NCBI RefSeq assembly: GCF_006345805.1
Contig: NW_021826934.1
Coordinates: 1-11,676, forward strand
Length of the DNA: 11,676 bases
Reading direction: 5' to 3'
Source of the DNA: Octopus sinensis
Taxonomy: Eukaryota
How positions within the stretch are numbered: position 1 is the stretch's first letter; the number at the start of each line of letters is the position of its first letter. Below are positions 1 through 11,170 of this stretch, one piece after another. A program made the position numbers and the translations under genes. The notes under the pieces were generated by a model. That model worked only from the letters and a program-made list of their open reading frames with translations, was not told the origin of the DNA and did no database searches.

Positions 1-78
1 ATGAAAAATGAATGGAAGTTTGTGGCAAAATCTTCTTCAAACGAAGAAGGGAAATCTCTTAATTAGATAATTTAGTTT
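1..78 (-). CDS. Possible continuation (next exon) of the IFT74-like gene, running off the left edge of the window
   Basis: Follows an AG at 79-80. Reads KLNYLIK-EISLLR-EEDFATNFHSFF only if two single-base deficits are assumed. This loosely parallels recalled IFT74 KISELTTEVNKLQKGIE. Weak similarity. Confidence 0.3.
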
Positions 79-82
79 CTTA

Positions 83-305
83 ACAGCGGTTTGCGTGGGC
101 GTCTGCAAGGCCTTTGACAGTGGCTGGTATTTTTGATTGTTAGAGAAAGTGGCGGAATATTTAAAACAGCTGGGTGTAGATAAGTCTCGAAAGACCTATA
201 TACAGTCAATTGTTCTTAAAAGGACTCTGGAGAGTGTCTCGTTTGATGCTCGCCGATCCAGCCCTTTCCTGACGTTTACTCAGCGAGAGACGCTGGCCTG
301 CACCT
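83..305 (+). mobile_element. 3'-terminal remnant of an R4-like REL non-LTR retrotransposon (copy 1), antisense to and interrupting the IFT74-like gene
   Basis: The frame from 83 gives ...EYLKQLGVDKSRKTYIQSIVLKRTLESVSFDARR. This matches the C-terminal YIQSIVLKKTLESI-type motif also seen in copy 2 (YIKSLVLEKTIESI) and copy 3 (YIRSIMIRKTLKNM). In-frame TGA at 134-136. GC-richer than the flanks. Confidence 0.65.
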
Positions 306-349
306 GATAAATACAAATTGCAACCAAAATGATAAATACAATTGCAACC
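305..349. repeat. Short imperfect tandem duplication, ~20 bp x2
   Basis: tgataaatacaaattgcaacc (305-325) and tgataaatacaattgcaacc (330-349) differ by one base. It duplicates the 5' end of IFT74 intron 5. Confidence 0.9.
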
Positions 350-698
350 TCAAAAGTCCATGAATAAGTTTTATCTTGAACAGTTCTTCGCGTGGAAGCT
401 ATAAATTCATGATTTCCTAAGTAAACCAGTATCCATCCGAAGTCCTCCTAGACCATGTTGAGTTGTGGGACGGTCTTGAATTTTGATTGGCGGGTTAATG
501 ACTATAATGCAAAAATTGAGATTCAAATAATCAATAAATACCTACTCCAGAAGGCTTTGAAGACTGTTGATTTCTCTATAATATTAAATAAGCTTCATTA
601 AATACAGCTGCAGTAGATAAGCGAGTTGCAGTTCCCGTCATTTGTCGATTTGTTGATACTGAAAATTAATATTGTTGTAAACCATTTTCCTTTTTCAT
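349..698 (-). CDS. IFT74: Intraflagellar transport protein 74-like, N-terminal exons 1-5 (spliced)
   Basis: Exons 698-683, 658-606, 575-542, 501-427, 398-349; GT-AG introns of 24, 30, 40 and 28 nt. The spliced frame is open: MKKENVSTNRQMTGTATRLSTAARNQQSSKPSGVVINPPIKIQDRPTTQHGLGGLRMDTASTRRTVQDKTY. This matches recalled IFT74 [38 protein letters not shown]. After DKTY, two single-base deficits would restore YFMGLLR (cf. YYLGLLR). Confidence 0.8.
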
Positions 699-1258
699 CA
701 CAAAAAAATTTTATATGGTTTCTATAGCAAAATTATATTTATACAAATAACAAAAAATAAAATGCCAAAATAAAAGACTTACGGAATTGTGAAATTTCTC
801 AAACGACATTTTTAAATTAAAAAATATAGATGTGTATAATTTTTCACTGAAAAATCAATTTTCCTCTAAAAACATCTTTTCTGAGTTTTTTCAAAAAGAA
901 TGTTGATTATTCTTATCTGAGTATTTTCAATTTCTACAAAAGTCTTGTGGGTGGGACGGTGTCTATCGTTTTTGTCAAGAAATTTGAGTCTCTTCACGGC
1001 GTATCATGCCATAAATTATTGAAATTGTCAGTGAAATATATTCACAAGAGTTTTGGTTTTATTTAATTCTTGAAAAAAAATTCGTGGATCACCAGATGGT
1101 TTATGTCCAATCACATGTATGTCAATATTATATAATTTACTTACAAGTTTAATTATTATTTGGGATAATTTGATCTTGTGTCTGATGGGAGCAAAAAGAA
1201 AGTGTCAGGATGCAAAAAGCAAATTTTCATCCATTCATAATGTAAAGCAAAAAATTAT

Positions 1259-1975
1259 TTATAACAAAAACTCAGGAACTTTTGATTTTTTAGAGTTCTG
1301 TTCATCGAAAATCTAAGCTTTCAATGGATTCAAGATTTTCAACATCTAAGAATTCTTCTTGATTGTGGAATTTATTTAAAACTTAAAAACTTCGTTAAAG
1401 TTACAGCTTTCTGACTTTCCTCTAGGGGTTCTTCACTATCAATTTCTTGTTCTAATGTTCCGAATCATTAAAGTCAAATTCTTCATTTTTACTGTAGTCA
1501 ATTTCGATATAAATTCTCTCTTCTAAAGGATCACTTATGTTCATTTTTTATAAAATATATTCGTAATTTTCAATGACAGGGTTTTCATAATTTATAAATT
1601 TTTTCTATTATGTTTCCCCAATTTCCCATTTCAAAAGGAATTGATTAAAAATTCGGCTAATTTGATATCACATTAAGGTCAAAATTTAAAGTTGCAAATT
1701 CTCCATGCATATTTCGTAACTTCAAATTATTCCTTTTTTTAAATTTAACAAGCCATCCTTGCATTCTTTAAAATCATTGAATCCTCATTCCGAAGCAAAT
1801 ATTTTGCCTTTCTGAGTAATAATTTCATCGTTCAAAATGGCTTCTTTAGCATCCATTGAATTAATCTAAGAAATCGTATCATTATCGATTTCACAAAACT
1901 TTAAATATTCTTTAAGAAAAATGTCAGATCTTAAGTTATTCAAAATATTTCCTCTTTTATTTTCAGATTATAATA
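1259..1975 (-). mobile_element. Decayed pogo/Tigger (CENP-B/Tc5-type) DNA transposase remnant with the DDE domain deleted
   Basis: The minus strand at ~1850-1690 reads LNDEIITQKGKIFASE*GFNDFKECKDGLLNLKK/NNLKLRNMHGE, like the HTH_Tnp_Tc5 consensus (KAKEFAKELG..DFKASNGWL..FKKR.NI....I.GE). ~1548-1259 is an acidic tail ending SKKSKVPEFLL*, like the typical K-QxKITDFF end. Stops and frameshifts are present. No TIRs found. Confidence 0.72.
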
Positions 1976-2105
1976 GATCTACAAGAAATAGGTACATTAT
2001 ATTTTTCAGAAAAAAATTCTGAAATTTTTATGGAAGGTACAGTGGGTCAAATTGATCTTTGGAGAATTTTTTATTTTTAATATAATTTTATTTTCTATTA
2101 CATAA

Positions 2106-2652
2106 CTGTTTTATTTAAGTTTTTCCAAAAGTATAAAGTTCACCTAATTTTTTTACAAAACAAAGAGATAGAAGAAAAGCGTTAAGTCCCAGCGGCAAGG
2201 ACGCAGTATGCGTTGTCGCGAACAATGGCCAGACCGATGCGCTGGCAGAACCAGAGGCCCTCTCTCGGGTCCTTGTACCTCCTCCCAATGGACTGCCCGA
2301 CCTCGTTGAGGAACGAGTCAGTCTTTTTCCCGCGGCTCCAGCGGTCTCCAGGGCGATTGGCATAACGCGGTAGGGGTCCGCGAACAAAGAATATTTTTGT
2401 ATTTTTATCTTTTCGGCGTGGTTTGCAGCCGAACAAGGGTTCGCGGCGGAAGAATAGATCCTCGACTTTGAAAAGGTATCCACAACGATAACATCCCATA
2501 CGAGGGCCTTCCCCGACGAGTACGGGAATATTGTCATCCCGTCAGGCCTTTTGCCGTCTCCCCGATCGAGTCCGACTGGTTTGAGGAGGCACGAATGGCC
2601 CGCCGATTCGAGACCGGCCTTCACGATTCTATTGAGGGCCTTGTGTCTGTGT
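2106..2652 (-). mobile_element. 5'-truncated CRE-like non-LTR retrotransposon fragment (restriction-like endonuclease domain plus short 3' UTR)
   Basis: Two overlapping ORFs join at a single-base shift in the T5 run at 2324-2328. The joined product is RHKALNRIVKAGLESAG...GLDRGDGKRPDGMTIFPYSSGKALVWDV..VDTF...AEKIKIQKY...PIALETAGAAG/KKTDSFLNEVG...DPRE..WFCQRIGLAIVRDNA, stop at 2182-2184. Sharply GC-richer than the flanks. Candidate 8-bp TSD ttacataa at 2098-2105 and 2653-2660. Confidence 0.85.
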
Positions 2653-3569
2653 TTACATAATAAAACATATAAAAATAATCCAAAATCAATTTATTTTAAG
2701 ATTCAGAAAACTTTTTAATTGCAAATGATGTTAATTAACTCTTGGTCTGAATTTCAGTGGTTATCTATTAATTTTAGTGAAAATGAAAATAATGTTGGAA
2801 AAGTTTCTAAATTTATAACCAGCTAAATAAAATAACTTGATTTTACTGATTTAGTCTTTAAAAAATGTATTTGAAAATTCGTTTAAAATGTGGCCATGTA
2901 GATAAATTTCTTTTTTAGTTCACCATGAGGAAACATTAAGATAGATTACATAAAACCAAAATTCTAATTGAAACTAAGAAAATTTTATTTTCCCCGTTAC
3001 ACAAAAGCGGAAAAAAGATCATAGTAAAAGATTGTTGATATTAAGCTAAGAATTTTTTTATAAATGTTGTTGATTATTTGTATCCAGAAAAAAAATAATT
3101 GATAAAAAATTTGCTGGTTAATAAGGCGTGGACCATAATTAATGCAGTTTTTCATTTCAGTCTAAACTAATTAAAATTTAATTAAACTACAGTTTATTTG
3201 TTATTTTATAGATTGAATATAAATAGGAAGGAAGTAATAAGAATAATTTAATCTAGACAAAACAGCGATCATCAATTTTTAGTTTAGATGATATATAAAC
3301 GGATTTGAGAAACGTGTTGACTAATAATTCTATTTCCAGAAAATAAAAATATTAAATATTGAAACATTTCAAAATAGAAGAGTTCTAACAAAACAATTTT
3401 CATTTTTCAATACATAATTTTATCCAAAAACAGACAAACATGAAATATCAAAATAACTTTAAACATAAATTCTTACATTTACATCAGCTATACATTACCC
3501 CCTTCCTCAAGATCTTACAATTAATTCAAAGATCAAAATTATGGAAAAATCTATATCTTTTATTGTTAG

Positions 3570-3799
3570 AAATCCGATAAAAACGTTTCTTGGTTTGAGA
3601 ACAAGCCCAGAACTTATGAGGGCCGTTCCAAATTTCGTTGCATCTATTCCGTGTTTTTAGTGCATAAAAATGTCGAGTCTTTGGTTTTGGAGAAAGTTGA
3701 TGGAGTTAACGTTTTGGGTTTCCGTCCTGAAAATATGAAAGAGTAGTACTTGTAATCCCAAAGCATGTTAAATTGCCACGTGTGGGTGCCGACAGGGCT
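3570..3799 (-). pseudogene. CAF1/POP2/CNOT7-like deadenylase gene fragment, copy A (one 23-nt intron, one in-frame stop)
   Basis: Removing intron 3749-3727 (gtactac...tttcag) gives SPVGTHTWQFNMLWDYKTETQNVNSINFLQNQRLDIFMH*KHGIDATKFGTALISSGLVLKPRNVFIGF. This aligns gap-free with recalled CNOT7 YPPGTSTWQFNFKFNLTEDMYAQDSIELLTTSGIQFKKHEEEGIETQYFAELLMTSGVVLCEGVKWLSF. TAA at 3657-3659. Confidence 0.78.
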
Positions 3800-4072
3800 G
3801 CGTCTATACCTAATCATCTTACAATTAATTCAGGGATCAAAATTATGAAAATATTAAATATTGAAACATTTCCAAAATACAAGACTAGTTCTAAGAAAAC
3901 AATTTTCATTTTTCAATACATAATTTTATCCAAAAACAGACAAACATGAAATTTTAAAATTACTTTAAACATAAATTCTTACAATTACATCAGCTATACA
4001 TTACCCCCTTCAAGATCTTACAATTAATTCAAGGATCAAAATTATAGAAAACTCTATATCTTTTATCGTTAG

Positions 4073-4302
4073 AAATCCGATTAAAACGTTTCTTGGGTTG
4101 AGAACAAAACCAGAACTGATGTGCAGCGTTCCAAATTTCGTTGGATCTATTCCGTGTTTTTAGTGCATAAAAATGTCGAGTCTTTGGTTTTGGAGAAAGT
4201 TGATGGAGTTAACGTTTTGGGTTTGCGTCCTGAAAATGTGAAAGAGTAGTACTTGTAATCCCAAAGCATGTTAAATTGCCACGTGTGGGTGCCGACAGGG
4301 CT
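4073..4302 (-). pseudogene. CAF1/POP2/CNOT7-like deadenylase gene fragment, copy B
   Basis: Same structure as copy A: 23-nt intron 4252-4230 and TAA at 4160-4162. Reads ...HTWQFN...H*KHGIDPTKFGTLHISSGFVLNPRNVLIGF. Confidence 0.78.
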
Positions 4303-4402
4303 GCGTCCATACCTAATCATCTTACAATTAATTCAGGGATCAAAATTATGAAAATATTAAATATTGAAACATTTCCAAAATAAAATTTTAAACAAAGAAT
4401 TT

Positions 4403-4591
4403 TTTGGTGTTAATCCCATTTAGTTTGCTATTAATCCCATAGTGTTTGGTATTAATTCCACTTAGTTTGATGTTAATCCCATTTAGTTTTCTGCTAATCC
4501 CACTTAGTTTGATGTCAATCCCATTTAGTTTGATGTTAATCCCATTTAGTTCTCTGCTAATCCCACTTAGTTTGGTGTTAATCCCATTTAG
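4403..4591. repeat. 21-bp minisatellite, 9 copies, consensus tttgRtgttaatcccaYttag
   Basis: Nine contiguous 21-nt units with no indels, starting at 4403, 4424, 4445, 4466, 4487, 4508, 4529, 4550 and 4571. It explains ORFs 4388-4615(-) and 4446-4634(+). Confidence 0.97.
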
Positions 4592-4592
4592 T

Positions 4593-5987
4593 ATGGGAAA
4601 TGGTATAGAATCCATAAACGACGTGAAATGTTAGGATGGATAATTTTTACGGGTTATAGAAGACAAAGGGAGTAATGTAATGAAAAGTGAAGTTTTGAAG
4701 ACTATTGCGGAAAATGTGAATAAGAGAATTGTAAGCTTGGTGCATATAAAACACAATTTGTTAATATCTTCGAATAAAGAAACGAATATGCGTAATCGTT
4801 TTACAATCTTGAACCTAAGTATTTTGAAAATATTGATTTGGAAATCCGACATGTAATATCAGAGCATAAAATTTACCTACAACCGGCTAACATCGAAAAA
4901 CCAAGTCTGAAAGGGCTTTATCTCAATTACTATAAAAAGCGAGAATATGCTGTTTTAATTTATTAATGATTTGGAAAGAGAATCGGATATTTTTGAGAAA
5001 GAATGGAATCTTCTCAGTCTTGAAAGCTAAAAGAACACATGTGACTACGATCGTCAGATTTCCTATTTTTAAACATAAATTGAATCCAACTTATGTTAAT
5101 ATCAAAGCTATTAGAGACTCCCAGAAGTTTCTTCTTGAATCAATTGCAAAACCGCACAATTCTATTTTTTTAACATTTGTGAGAATGAGGAAGTTGATAT
5201 TGGTGACTCTTCTTAATGGCTTGCAAAAGGGAATAACAGCCCAAGATCTGAAGCCATTTATTGTTTGTTTTAGAATAGAAATATATTTTATAATAAAAAA
5301 GAATCAACATTAATCACTGTAACCAGAAAATAGGCGAATCATTTGGTTTATGATGTAATAGAATGTTCAACGGTTAGGGTTAGGGTGATTATTGTAGACA
5401 TAATGAGGTTGTTAGATGCGCAAATCTTTATTTATGCAAAAATTATAACAATAAAATCTCCATAAGTTTCAAGACACACTCAATTCTGTCAATTGTTGCG
5501 ACAAAGAGTGTAAAAATCAGAGTGGGCACTTTAATTATGGCTGAAAATGAAATGCAAACAACAAACCAGATATTTTTATATTTAACAAAATGAAGATTGA
5601 GATAGGTGATTATAGAAGTTAGAATCACGTACTTAAACAGACTGAGGTGGAAAAACTACACAAGTAAGACTTGTTAGCCAGTGAATTGAAAATTTTACAC
5701 AATGCTCCTGTAAAAATAGAATGCTCCTAACATAGGATAAATTGTGCAAAATCCTGAACCATGTGATTGATGTCTCAATTAGAACATATATTAAATCGCT
5801 AGTACTCGAGAAAACTATTGAAAGTATTATCGTGGAGCATAAACATGAAATCATAGCTTCAAATGAGGATATTTTATGTACCATGGATCGATTGGAAGAA
5901 CGTTCAATTAATTATGTTCACGAGATGGCACGTCCGGCTGTCAAGAAAAAAGTAGAAATCGTGTGGATGCTCGGTCTGTTAAATTAA
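4593..5987 (+). mobile_element. Decayed 5'-truncated R4-like REL non-LTR retrotransposon (copy 2): end of RT/thumb, zinc-knuckle region, REL endonuclease, C-terminus
   Basis: Motifs appear in the expected order across shifting frames: RVIEDKGS (~4650), FYNLEPKYFENIDLEIRHVISEHKIYLQPA..LYL (~4800-4930), ENEEVDIGDSS*WLAKGNNSPRSEAIYCLF*NRNIF (5181-5290), DYCRHNEVVRCANLYLCKNY (5387-), NKPDIFIF (5560-), VIIEVRIT (5606-), EKLHK*DLLASEL (5650-), TYIKSLVLEKTIESI (~5785-5830). Many stops and frameshifts. Confidence 0.85.
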
Positions 5988-6698
5988 AAAAGAAAAGTCT
6001 GTTAATTAAGTTATATTAGTTAGTGGAATTTTTCTGTTTGAATTTTCTTTTTATTTAATGCTGCTTAAAATTTTTCAATGGGTTTAAAACTAAAATTCAA
6101 ATTAAATATTAAGTCTTGTTATTAAACTTCAATTATCGTTTAAATAATTTTTTTAGTCCTTTGGATGACGAATCCGTGTTTGTTTTTCTTATTTTATCTA
6201 ACGGAGTAGCCGTTTTATTTCAAAAAATGCTTTAAAATCATTCTGAAACAACAGAGCCTTATTTTTTCAAACATTCAAATGTGTAAATCAAAATACACGC
6301 GGACACAATGATCAAACTAAAAACAATAATATTTGTATCTTTAACAGAAGACAGGATATCCTTACGAGGCTAGTTCTAAGAGAATCTATGGAGTAAATAA
6401 AAAAATAAATTGGACATAAGTGGTAAGAAAGAATATAGTATATTTAGAATAAAATAATGTTTTTAACTAAGAAACATAAATTAACATTAATGAGGAAGAA
6501 GAAAAGGCATTTTAGGATAGTTATGGGATATTTATATGCAACAACATTGAAACTAAATCCTTAAAAATAATTCATACAATCAAAAAACGGTACTTTAGAA
6601 GTGTATATTTATTTCTCACACTTTTTACAGTTAGAGAAGACAAATTTAAAAGAAAAAACACAATATCTATATATAAATCAATAAATCGAATTAAAATT

Positions 6699-7583
6699 TT
6701 ATTTTATTCTACGTCTTCTTCCTCGACGAGGCTTTATTATTTCAATTTCTTCATATTTATCTCCCTATAATCGATATTTGATTTTAAACAAACATCGCTA
6801 TTATATATGGTATCTTTAGTAGACTGAATAGAATCGGTACCACTGATCACTTCCGAACTACTGGATTGTTCCCTATGTTCTTGGATGAGAGTATCGTTTA
6901 AAAGTGTTCTAAAAATAGCTCTCATATTTAACAAACATCGAAGGAGCAGAATCAACTCCAATATTTGAAAAATTGAACAATTTTTCATTCTCTAAAATAA
7001 TCAAGTAAATATATTCACCGGATATTAATCTGAAAAAATATCGTCTAAAATCATTCTAAGACAAAGAATAGAAAATGTTACGGCTGATGTTGTTGAAGAA
7101 AGATTAAAGAGAAAACTACGCATCATTTTCCAGAAATCTATGAAGAGTTGATACCCACGATTTTCCAATCGACCTAATGCATCATCAATAGCCTATGGAA
7201 ATCAAAATTGACAGATTTACAATTTCATGTTTTATAAGAAATTTGTTAAGAAGGACCTTGTATAGTAAGACAGAACCCTTGGTGATTGGAGATAGCATCC
7301 AAAAGATAATAAGAATTTTTAATTCATAATAAAAAGGTATCCAAATGAGAAAAATGTCTGAAAATATTTCAATAGCTAAGAATGCAGAAAATGTAATCCA
7401 AAACATAAGCAATTCGGGCTAAATAGAAATTAAATAAACAATTTTAATACATATTGTCTTGCATTTTTGGATCGAAGTGACTTAAATGAGTTGTATGCAG
7501 CATAATGGGACGACTCCATTTCTTAATAAATTTTAAAAGACCAAAAAATACATAGTCAATTTGCTTATCAAATGCGCGATCAT
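6699..7583 (-). CDS. REEP: Receptor expression-enhancing protein, REEP1-4 type (TB2/DP1/HVA22 family ER-shaping protein); 8 exons, ~228 aa, apparent 2-nt deficit in exon 2
   Basis: Exons 7583-7552, 7521-7451, 7418-7221, 7192-7082, 7055-7019, 6991-6937, 6908-6794, 6764-6699. GT-AG introns of 30, 32, 28, 26, 27, 28 and 29 nt. Product MIAHLISKLTI...YAAYNSFKSLRSKNARQY|PELLMFWITFSAFLAIEIFSDIFLIWIPFYYELKILIIFWMLSPITKGSVLLY...KHEI|AIDDALGRLENRGY...KPRRGRRRRIK*. Exons 2-8 splice in one open frame; exon 1 joins exon 2 out of frame by 2 nt. Confidence 0.9.
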
Positions 7584-8451
7584 ATTGACTAAAATATATA
7601 AGAGCATAAAATATTGATTTAAATAGAATAATTTTTATGAACTAAAAAAATTATGAAAAAACATACAACAACCATAATAGTGTGCCGCTATAATAAAAAC
7701 CGTAATATATATTATTAAAATCAAAATAATAAAAATTTCAATATAAATAATTAAAAATCATTTTAAAATAAAATACAATAGTTCATGCGGTTGGGTTCAA
7801 AAATTGATAATGGATGTTCATGTCGTCATCAAATAATAATTATGTTCCAGTAAAAATAGCAATAAAATTTTTATAATCTCCGTGATTATGACCGAAAAAA
7901 CTATAAAAGACGAAAAATGTAATCATCAGTAGATCAACCATTGTTTTTTTCTAATTAATAAGTATATATTCGCTAAGGGCACCTAAGGATAAAACTTGCA
8001 TACGTCATATTAGAATCGTAATTGTTGCATTTTTGACACCTTGATTTTTAATTCAATGCGACAAACTTACTCATTTAGACTTCACCACCATGTAAAAAAC
8101 TGTGAAAGAAACAGCAGCCGTTAGTGGCGTATTCTGACAATGCCGATCCTTGATTTCGAAGGACGAAGATAGTGGGGTGCATTATATTTAAATGAGCCAC
8201 AGTTTTTTTAGTTCTAGGTTTCATCCAAACTGTGTTTGAAATGGCAACTTCCTAGAACATAGTAGTCCTCATTTTTATGAGAGGAAAGATTCAGTGTGGT
8301 GGACCTTGGAGGATGTCAGCCAAGGATTTTGTTTGATGCAACCTATCTGATCAAATAGGCTGACATTTAACAATTTGATATTCATAGTTAAATAATCATA
8401 GTCATATATTTAATTGTTCACTATGTTCTATCTTGTAGTGCGTGCCCTAGA

Positions 8452-8490
8452 AGGTGGAGGTCCAGCGCCTCTCGCTGATTAAATGTCAGG
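8452..8490 (-). repeat. Dispersed ~39-bp motif, inverted copy of 268-305
   Basis: The reverse complement cctgacatttaatcagcgagaggcgctggacctccacct matches cctgacgtttactcagcgagagacgctggcctgcacct at 34 of 39 aligned positions. Confidence 0.85.
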
Positions 8491-8719
8491 TAGTAAAAAC
8501 AGATAAATATTTAGTTGCTTGCCATAACGTCTATACCATTTTCAAGTCAATTTGTTTATTACAAACTTCAAAAAACAAATTTTCAAGTACAAACTTCAAA
8601 TTGTAATTACGAAAGTCAATGTTGGATATAACAAATTTTTCGTCAAAATACATTAAAAATTGTTTTAGATGACTGAAAAAAACAAGAAATCGCAAATACA
8701 GTGGTAAAACAAAAAAATA

Positions 8720-9337
8720 ATAATTGAAACACACGAAAAATCTTTGTACAACATAGAATTTATTTGAGCCCTAGAGATAAAGATCATTTGCCAATGTGTC
8801 AACTTAAAAGAGGACTAGTATTCATCTCACATAACGTGAGAAAATGCTTGTTCAATTTATAAGATATGGAAAAGAAATCATACTATGGCCTAATAAGAGA
8901 TAAGATTCTGCGGCACTGAAAGCAAGGATTTTCAAGAAAATGCATCTGGCTGAAATCTTAGCATCTATTAGTAACAAGTACAGACTCGATGCTTTTCGAA
9001 TTATAAGATTAAAGAAAAATAGGTGCATTCGACACTTTTTAACTGTCTAGAAGACATCAATACAGACATCTTCGGATCTGCTTAGTGGCTTGTGCAAGAA
9101 AAAAATTCACCTAAAATTAAAAGAATGCTATTTTCTGTAAAAAAACCTTCTTTGGTCCATTCAAAGACAGATTCGTGCTAAAATGTTGATTGAAGCACTG
9201 AAGAAGGGTAGGCATCATGAGAGCCCTTTCCAATACATGGGACCGTCAACATTCCCTCAATTTGGAGGTACGATAAAAGCATATATTCGCAGTATTATGA
9301 TAAGGAAAACCTTGAAAAATATGCTATTTGAATACAC
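8720..9337 (+). mobile_element. Decayed R4-like REL non-LTR retrotransposon (copy 3), left part, interrupted by the hAT element
   Basis: Motifs: RKIFVQHRIYLSPRDKDHL..QLKRGL (~8730-8820), KMHLAEILASISNKYRL (~8935-8990), HSTLFNCLEDINTDIFGSA*WLVQEKNSP (~9025-9115), NTWD (~9232) and IKAYIRSIMIRKTLKNMLFEYT (to 9337). Most of the zinc-knuckle/endonuclease segment is missing. Confidence 0.75.
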
Positions 9338-11162
9338 CAGGGGTGGCCAACCTTTTTCACCGGCGAGCTACTTTTCATTTTGCGATTTTTTGGAGATCGA
9401 TTTATATATTTTAATATCAAAAATTTTATTTTACAATTAAAAATTAATGCGATTTTTGGCATTGTAATTCACTTGCGATTATTTCAATCTTCGATCAACG
9501 TCAAAAATCTTGCTAAATTCTTCTGAAATATTTTCGATGTCTACATCCATGAACGGAGAAACAAAGAAACTGCATAATATAGTAATTTTCTTGAAATCGC
9601 TAAATCTGTTATTAAACTCGTTCATTATTTTTTCTAGTACCATAGCAAATTCATTGACATAATGATTTTTATTCACAAGTTGTTTTGTGAATTCATCTTC
9701 AATGTTAGGAAAATGGGTAAAATTTTCTTTTCTGATTTGAGATATCCATAATTCCAACTTCATTATGAAAGCATTTATTGAACTGATCATATCGATAATA
9801 TATCTATTCTTTCCCTGTAATTCTAAATTGAGTTCATTCAGTTTGCTGGTAATATCGGTTAAAAATGCCAAGTTTATTAGCCAAACAGGATTTTCAAGAA
9901 AATGCCAATTCTTGTTGTTTTCTTTAGAAAATTCTTTAATGTATGATAATAATTCTCTGAAACGACTGAGAATTAATCCCTTGCTTAACCATCTTATGTC
10001 ACAATGTAAAGGTAGATCGCCATAGATTGCATCGACTTGTTCTAGAAAAAGTCGAAATAATCTTCTTTGTAGGGGCTTGGCTCGGATGGAATTAATAATT
10101 TTAACTGTTGTCTCCATAACATAGTTAAAATTTAACATTTTCCCACATAATGCATGTTGGTGAATGATGCAATGATATGATAAAAATTTCGGAAAATGTT
10201 CATCTTTCCGACAAAATGCAATAAATCCATTTTGATTCCCAATCATTGCAGGGGCTCCATCTGTTGTTATGGATACAAGTTTCTTCATTAACGGTAATAA
10301 TTCGAATGATAACAAAAACGTTTTGAAAGAATTATAAATATTTTCACCAGTTGTTCTTTCTTTCATAGGTATAATAGCAAATAACTCTTCCTTGACAATT
10401 AGATCATGGAAGATTAAACGGGAAAATACACATAGTTGGGCGATATCAATAGCATCGTTTGATTCGTCAAACTGTAGAGAAAAACACGAACATGCGTAAA
10501 GATCCTTTTTTAACTGCGAAAGAAGATTTTCAGAAATGCTTTCAGCCCTTCTGACAATTGACTGTTTTGAGAGCTGAAGCTCTTTGATGCAATTTGAAAT
10601 TTCCTGTTTATTTTTCATACCATCAAATAGTGAATCGGCAGCTTCCAAAAAACAAGATTTTAAAATTTCCCCATCAGTGAAAGGTTTTTTGTGTTTTACG
10701 AGGAGACGAGTCACTCGCAATGATGCAATTGTTGCAGATCTGGACGAATTAATAAACTTTTTCAAAATTGTATGTTGTGAAAAAAAGATTTTTTTAATTG
10801 TTCAACTTTCTCTTCCCGTAATAAGGAATTTAAAGGAAAGTGTTTGTTGAACTCGGGATGTAAAGAATTAAAATGCCGACAAAGATTTCCCCTTTTTGGT
10901 AATGAAATGATTTTATTGCATAGCATACATGTGCATTTTTCCATATGCATCGTAAAAATATAGTCTTTTTCCCATTTGGCATTAAATTTATATGATTTGG
11001 ACTTTTTGTTACACCTCATAACAAGACACGTGAAAAATACTTACTTTAATATTGATAAATATTTTTTTTATAATAATTTAAATACAAAAAAAATAATTAG
11101 CAATTTATATATCGAGCGATCGACCACGAAACATGCCGCGATCGACTGGTTGGCCACCCCTG
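9338..11162 (-). mobile_element. hAT DNA transposon (Buster/Charlie/SPIN, GTF2IRD2-like), 1825 bp, with both TIRs and TSD; internally deleted
   Basis: Perfect 15-bp TIRs caggggtggccaacc (9338-9352) and ggttggccacccctg (11148-11162). Identical 8-bp TSD gaatacac at 9330-9337 and 11163-11170, with the central TA typical of Buster-type targets. Subterminal repeats gcgatcgac at 11116 and 11138. Confidence 0.97.
9479..11019 (-). CDS. hAT transposase (BED zinc finger, DUF4371-like region, catalytic core), frameshifted and C-terminally truncated
   Basis: ORF 11019-10762 (CMLC...RHFNSLH BED finger) joins ORF 10765-9479 by one extra base in the A7 run at 10780-10786. Motifs present: SLQFDES, TTDGAPAM, HCIIHQHALC, HCDIRWLSKG, LAFLTDITSKLNELNLELQG. 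The C-terminal dimerisation domain with the catalytic Glu (STY.CE..FS) is absent. Confidence 0.92.
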
Positions 11163-11170
11163 GAATACAC

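Follow-up and report, generated by a model that had tools for sequence, protein, structure and literature searches.

The window analysed here, the whole 11,676-nucleotide stretch of contig NW_021826934.1 from the Octopus sinensis assembly GCF_006345805.1, carries a REEP1-type gene and the 5′ part of an IFT74 gene, both interrupted by GT...AG segments of 24–40 nt. Judged by comparison with homologous proteins, these segments appear to be real ultra-short spliceosomal introns, and homology fixes the intron boundaries at four junctions. We read the window as nuclear DNA of a dicyemid mesozoan with shrunken GT-AG introns, with Dicyema japonicum, or a near relative living in Octopus sinensis, as the likeliest source, and assign this reading a probability of roughly 0.85. 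The genetic code is standard, REEP has animal affinity, and transposons are held in common with contigs of the octopus assembly. An earlier, sequence-only reading of the same DNA had proposed thirteen introns. We located eleven of these, ten as described and one, REEP intron 1, after re-modelling; the other two, a fifth IFT74 donor and an intron in a CAF1 gene, did not hold up.

The REEP gene in the window is intact. A TB2/DP1/HVA22 domain was found with Pfam on the minus-strand segment 7418–7188, and excision of seven GT...AG segments of 28, 32, 28, 26, 27, 28 and 29 nt gives an open reading frame (ORF) of 228 codons, as follows.

6699–7583, minus strand: REEP1-type gene (TB2/DP1/HVA22), 228 codons, with ATG at 7583 and the TAA end at 6699
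7583–7542, 7513–7451, 7418–7221, 7192–7082, 7055–7019, 6991–6937, 6908–6794 and 6764–6699, minus strand: REEP exons of the spliced model
7541–7514, minus strand: REEP intron 1, 28 nt, GTCTTT...GGAG, homology-anchored
7450–7419, minus strand: REEP intron 2, 32 nt, GTATTA...TTTAG, homology-anchored
7220–7193, minus strand: REEP intron 3, 28 nt, GTAAAT...CATAG, homology-anchored
7081–7056, minus strand: REEP intron 4, 26 nt, GTAACA...CTTAG, from the frame only
7018–6992, minus strand: putative REEP intron 5, 27 nt, GTGAAT...TTTAG, unsupported
6936–6909, minus strand: REEP intron 6, 28 nt, GTTTGT...TTTAG, from the frame only
6793–6765, minus strand: REEP intron 7, 29 nt, GTTTGT...TATAG, weakly supported

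The spliced protein scores 74 bits against Pfam TB2_DP1_HVA22 (profile positions 2–76), and it aligns without a gap to ten REEP1-type proteins across residues 1–125 (alignment A1). A domain start near residue 1, together with this colinearity, places it in the REEP1-4 subfamily. A word-indexed protein search with exon 3 gave no match; an exhaustive search with the same query returned REEP relatives 45–59% identical to exon 3, most of which align at their own residues 39–100, so that the offset is the one predicted by the spliced model. The closest named REEPs are animal, from Helobdella (a leech), Lingula (a brachiopod) and insects.

Junctions in the conserved part were assessed with a hidden Markov model (HMM) of homologues built from the ten aligned REEP1-type proteins. 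Spliced exons 1–4 score 146.4 bits on this model, and moving the junction at intron 1 or 3 by one residue always lowers the score. Exon 2 contributes about 28 bits, compared with about 18 from exon 4 and about 6 from exon 1. At intron 1 a one-residue shift in either direction costs 3 bits, and the segment removed is the sole GT-AG pair found that links the ATG frame to the conserved frame of exon 2. The sequence-only reading had made this intron 30 nt long and the exception to frame conservation among its modelled introns. The 30-nt GTATTT...TTAAG segment does break the frame; the 28-nt GTCTTT...GGAG segment keeps it and gives a gap-free N-terminus, and the six other REEP lengths proposed earlier (32/28/26/27/28/29) match ours. 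With intron 2 excised the Pfam score is 76.8 bits (profile 2–76), up from 60.4 bits (profile 20–77); read-through gives 63.7 bits. This intron follows nucleotide 105 in phase 0, the same position as intron 2 of human REEP1, a gene of seven exons in which c.105+6 falls inside intron 2 (PMC2492855). That position and the colinearity with animal REEP1-type proteins are in line with the earlier reading of an animal source. At intron 3, one-residue shifts in either direction cost 5–6 bits, and alignment A1 shows E100 and D104 as invariant residues.

Introns 4, 6 and 7 are argued from the frame, since they lie in the non-conserved C-terminal part of the protein. Without excision of intron 4 the ORF ends at ...DDIFSD, in a region without homology, and without excision of intron 6 the frame ends at ...KYESYF. 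When intron 7 is retained the unspliced frame is open too; its removal gives the basic tail KPRRGRRRRIK, which resembles the basic C-termini of the homologues in A1. Putative intron 5 has a length that is a multiple of three and contains no in-frame stop, and its retention leaves the ORF open (segment 6912–7055); no homology bears on the segment, and the intron is neither required nor supported.

We located IFT74 by enumerating all GT...AG segments with the lengths given in the sequence-only reading. The proposed series of 24/30/40/28 nt was recovered exactly, on the minus strand at 698–349, and ends where the 3′ end of a long interspersed nuclear element (LINE) begins.

349–698, minus strand: IFT74 5′ fragment, 76 codons, ATG at 698, cut off at 349 by the LINE
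698–683, 658–606, 575–542, 501–427 and 398–349, minus strand: IFT74 exons, with the spliced product MKKENVSTNRQMTGTATRLSTAARNQQSSKPSGVVINPPIKIQDRPTTQHGLGGLRMDTASTRRTVQDKTYSWTFE
682–659, minus strand: IFT74 intron 1, 24 nt, GTTTAC...TTCAG, from the frame only
605–576, minus strand: IFT74 intron 2, 30 nt, GTATTT...TATAG, from the frame only
541–502, minus strand: IFT74 intron 3, 40 nt, GTATTT...TATAG, from the frame only
426–399, minus strand: IFT74 intron 4, 28 nt, GTTTAC...TATAG, homology-anchored
1–349, plus strand: LINE 3′ end (GC-richer, RLE-type non-long-terminal-repeat retrotransposon), with stops at 305–310 and then a tandem 20-mer ending at 349

In a search of all of PDB, the spliced IFT74 product had a sole match at E ≤ 10, Chlamydomonas IFT74 (8bd7_G, E 0.012, residues 82–139), with a marginal score of 19.5 bits. 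The product has the N-terminal basic region of IFT74, with the conserved motif RP-T-HG--G...R-V-DK-Y at its end. Each of the four IFT74 introns, if retained, produces a stop. For intron 1 this is an in-frame TAA, and its excision joins the ATG to the downstream exons; for intron 2 it is an in-frame TAG; neither has a homology anchor. Excision of intron 3 returns the frame into the conserved exon coding for IKIQDRPTTQHGLGGLRMDT. The junction at intron 4 lies within a gap-free PDB alignment of 28 residues, from DRP to DKtY, between the window and Chlamydomonas IFT74, and therefore at least one GTT donor (GTTTAC at 426) is homology-anchored.

The IFT74 copy is cut off after codon 76, at the LINE near the window edge, and so stops short of the long coiled coil through which IFT74 pairs with IFT81. 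The C-terminal peptide of this element, YLKQLGVDKSRKTYIQSIVLKRTLES, matches by tblastx the LINE ORF of L002, one of three fetched stretches of unplaced O. sinensis contigs (L001–L003) that served for comparison; L003 lies on VCDQ01009621.1, and the window lies outside the fetched stretches. What had been taken for a fifth IFT74 donor, GTTGCA at 348, is the reverse complement of the LINE tail, the tandem 20-mer 3′ of the plus-strand ORF stops, and is not a donor. With the LINE 3′ end abutting codon 76, the interruption affects at least this copy of a ciliary gene, in what would be a ciliated animal.

How much weight an open frame can bear was judged on another part of the window.

4644–5990, plus strand: RLE-type LINE fragment, AT-rich and full of stops

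This stretch, where IFT74 was first sought, looks coding, and a simple intron-aware ORF finder draws from it, over 4680–6087, 333 codons with 12 GT-AG 'introns' of 22–48 nt. Related copies elsewhere have the same protein in long uninterrupted ORFs, and the window copy has stops where those copies have sense codons. The stretch is a decayed, dead LINE and its 12 'introns' are false; the dynamic-programming intron-aware ORF modeller overfits. Since a dead LINE can be 'rescued' in this way, frame restoration by tiny GT-AG segments proves little in this window and is not evidence by itself in AT-rich DNA. The same artefact, and the truncation of IFT74, would suit a reading of REEP and IFT74 as decayed pseudogenes whose 'introns' merely step over frameshifts and stops. 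We consider that very unlikely, given that the conserved blocks of both genes are free of stops, that the interruptions are insertions of 24–40 nt relative to homologues and not indels of 1–2 nt, and that every one of them starts with GT, ends with AG and leaves gap-free alignments when excised. It is the GT/AG-bounded insertions relative to homologues that make the REEP and IFT74 introns credible.

All eleven located introns run from GT to AG and are 24–40 nt long (median 28), with 21% GC compared with 34% in exons. Four are homology-anchored (REEP introns 1–3 and IFT74 intron 4), six are supported by the frame only, and one, REEP intron 5, is unsupported. GT and AG bound 0.2% of random 24–40-nt segments of the window, compared with four out of four homology-anchored gaps and 11/11 introns. 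Donor position +3 is A in five introns, T in four, and G and C in one each; acceptor position −3 is T in nine, C in one and G in one, and T predominates at −5 and −6. GTT donors occur at REEP introns 6 and 7 and IFT74 introns 1 and 4; the remaining one of the five counted previously is the spurious IFT74 donor. The earlier counts of no GTAAG donor and nine TAG acceptors (9/11) were likewise reproduced, and, as had been said, no branch-point motif is evident in the eleven introns, nor does a further signal stand out. Retention brings a stop or a frameshift for ten of the eleven.

These would be ordinary U2-type GT-AG introns, shrunk to 24–40 nt. A conventional spliceosome could remove them while reading little beyond GT, a short T-rich stretch and AG, and the branch point is probably a loosely placed A. 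AT-richness and the narrow length range would help to define the introns, and retention would be caught through the stop or frameshift that it produces in 10/11.

A CAF1 gene with a 23-nt intron, also proposed by the sequence-only reading, did not materialize. A Pfam scan of six frames of 1–9340 (E ≤ 0.05) returned TB2_DP1_HVA22 only, and no CAF1, CAF1A or WD40 domain such as the CNOT7/POP2 RNase or chromatin assembly factor 1 would have; PDB searches of plausible sites gave no CAF1 match. When six-frame pseudo-proteins were compared with PDB even IFT74 was missed, because its exons are too short, so such negatives are weak for many-intron genes. The proposed 'CAF1' and its 23-nt segment probably lie in the following stretch.

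1290–2000, minus strand: acid-rich, coding-looking stretch, mostly in one frame, with in-frame TAA, TAG and TGA and one frameshift

Only one 23-nt candidate in coding-looking sequence combines a donor other than GTT with an acceptor other than TAG, and that is 1404–1382 (minus strand), inside this stretch. Comparison with Pfam, PDB and the fetched loci gave no match to the acid-rich stretch, the roughly 100 nt upstream of the TGA near 1785 contain no GT, and the dynamic-programming modeller run with a higher intron penalty found no gene in 830–2100. A decayed gene is one possibility for the stretch, several short ORFs another. As CAF1 candidates we rejected both this stretch, which has no PDB match, and an antisense ORF at 452–598 on the plus strand, which has no match.

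Further evidence on whose DNA this is comes from a mobile element at the far end of the window.

9338–11162: hAT element with CAGGGGTGGCCAACC inverted ends and an 8-bp target duplication, GAATACAC, at 9330–9337 and 11163–11170

Its host site is a decayed LINE copy (about 8990–9337 and 11163 onwards). The transposase ORF is 97–99% identical to three proteins named "[Octopus sinensis]", which lie on the unplaced contigs VCDQ01009551.1 (24.9 kb) and VCDQ01009621.1 (188 kb) of GCA_006345805.1. At the DNA level the window element is 99.1–99.5% identical to the copies on these contigs, and 99.5% identical, minus about 270 bp, to the L001 copy; the family looks recently active. The contigs and the window also have in common both LINE families and a 21-bp minisatellite. 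An IQUB gene on VCDQ01009621.1 (L003 18537–20047, minus strand) fits 449 codons into about 1.5 kb, so its introns must be tiny too, in the range of tens of bases. With these introns and with the hAT element, the LINE families and the minisatellite in common, the two unplaced contigs look like dicyemid DNA. D. japonicum has been collected from an O. sinensis host (PMC6736024), and a dicyemid origin of the window has good, if indirect, support: two contigs in the assembly of this octopus share the hAT element, and one of them carries a tiny-intron IQUB. The D. japonicum genome has 36.7% GC, 48.9% repeats and a mean intron of 38 bp (PMC6736024). The same source describes dicyemids as ciliated animals, in keeping with the finding of IFT74 and IQUB. 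The earlier suggestion of a ciliated, compacted animal such as a dicyemid thus draws support from the REEP affinity, the transposon sharing and the tiny IQUB introns.

That the closest database proteins to the transposase are labelled Octopus sinensis could instead mean that the window is genuine octopus nuclear DNA from correctly labelled contigs, with tiny-intron genes or transposons transferred from a parasite. We find this very improbable: the proteins so labelled are confined to a pair of unplaced contigs (24.9 and 188 kb), no other cephalopod name occurs among the best 120 transposase matches, the next named relatives are ≤55% identical, the IQUB gene of the larger contig has tiny introns as well, and cephalopod introns are kilobases long. 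There is similarly little to recommend very recent horizontal transfer between the cephalopod and its renal parasite, as opposed to contamination, as the source of the hAT and RLE-type LINE sharing (up to 99.5%).

A ciliate or another tiny-intron protist, for example a renal ciliate of cephalopods, could also supply introns of this size (15–35 nt in ciliates), and ciliates carry IFT74 and IQUB. We give this source the smallest chance, as TAA and TAG act as stops, both inside introns and, for TAA, at the REEP end, and in the conserved exons Q is encoded by CAA and W by TGG, in line with the standard code already suspected. The REEP protein is of REEP1 type with animals as its closest named relatives, and the named relatives of the hAT transposase (DUF4371 with a SPIN-DOC-like zinc finger) are all animals among the best 120 matches.

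Several points weigh against the dicyemid reading and its introns. Support for the introns comes from comparison of genomic sequence; for six of them it consists of an open frame, and for REEP intron 5 of nothing. REEP intron 1 requires an unusual GTC donor and GAG acceptor. The IFT74 copy may be dead as a result of the LINE truncation. The species assignment is indirect, the comparison set containing no Dicyema-labelled sequence, and searches of the protein collection turned up no same-species protein: with spliced REEP, spliced IFT74 and the acid-rich stretch joined into one query, a beetle REEP was the sole match.

The window as a whole is AT-rich, at about 30% GC, but GC-richer islands occupy 1–305 and 2180–2650, and transposon sequence makes up much of the window. 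Several fragments of non-long-terminal-repeat retrotransposons are present; their C-terminal part has a CCHC motif and, after it, a PD-(D/E)xK-like block. Besides the elements given above there is one further fragment.

2118–2690, minus strand: RLE-type LINE fragment, about 45% GC, with a 191-codon open frame

This fragment and the dead LINE at 4644–5990 have relatives on L001–L003 at 35–62% protein identity. Within the dead LINE, a telomere-like GGTTAGGGTTAGGGTG at 5372–5387 is an insertion relative to the intact copies. A 503-bp unit is present in 2 tandem copies of 94–95% identity at 3343–4380, and directly after it, at 4382–4613, come about 11 copies of the 21-bp minisatellite (TTAATCCCATTTAGTTTGATG-like), which also occurs at 642–681 of L001. 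Between REEP and the hAT-bearing LINE lies an island of 37% GC (8040–8480) with no match in Rfam or the fetched loci. Rfam and tRNA scans of the whole window gave no match, with no small nuclear RNA among them.

The phenomenon itself is already known. Ultra-short dicyemid introns with reduced splice signals were published in 2010, 2019 and 2026, and the earlier remark that their splicing is poorly understood overstated the novelty, as dicyemid intron lengths and reduced signals are on record (PMC6543705, PMC6736024, PMC13644364). The window adds two worked examples to that phenomenon, the shortest introns known in animals, including one homology-anchored GTT donor, a GTC donor and a GAG acceptor. 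The public O. sinensis assembly, and the proteins named after this species, appear to include dicyemid contigs. Proteins predicted on dicyemid-like contigs thus carry octopus names in public databases, and standard annotation is not expected to model genes correctly on such contigs.

Compared with human REEP1, the window gene has its third intron at the position of human intron 4, after c.303. The human intron at c.182/183 is missing, and the first intron follows nucleotide 42 where the human one follows nucleotide 32. Four further introns, in the divergent C-terminal part, are unlike human REEP1. The one position checked against its source is the common intron after coding nucleotide 105 (PMC2492855).

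Tiny ciliate introns resemble those of the window in being short, AT-rich and GT-AG, and in that retention usually leads to a premature stop. Paramecium introns are about 25 nt long. Those of Stentor measure 15–16 nt (PMC13644364). The window is unlike ciliates in its standard code and in the animal affinities of its gene and transposons, where ciliate DNA would have reassigned stops and non-animal affinities. Myxozoans, cnidarians that live in fish and annelids, would not be expected to retain ciliary genes; the window differs from them in the presence of IFT74, and of IQUB on the related contig, and its transposons tie the DNA to the octopus sample. Myxobolid myxozoans, parasitic animals with median introns of 22–27 bp, are similar in length range and in their reduced splice motifs (PMC13644364).

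Nothing substantive separates the window from published dicyemid logos, eleven introns being too few to claim a departure. In a survey of 51 animal genomes such introns were found only in myxobolids and D. japonicum, whose 5′ and 3′ splice signals have shrunk to GTa and AG, respectively (PMC13644364). The median intron of Dicyema sp. is 27 bp (PMC6543705, where Ogino 2010 is cited for ultra-short dicyemid introns). Dicyemids and the window have in common a median of about 27–28 nt, GT-AG termini, reduced 5′ GT(a) and 3′ AG signals, no clear branch point beyond a scattered A, many introns per gene, a repeat-rich genome, and intron positions conserved with other animals, as checked in the window for REEP intron 2.

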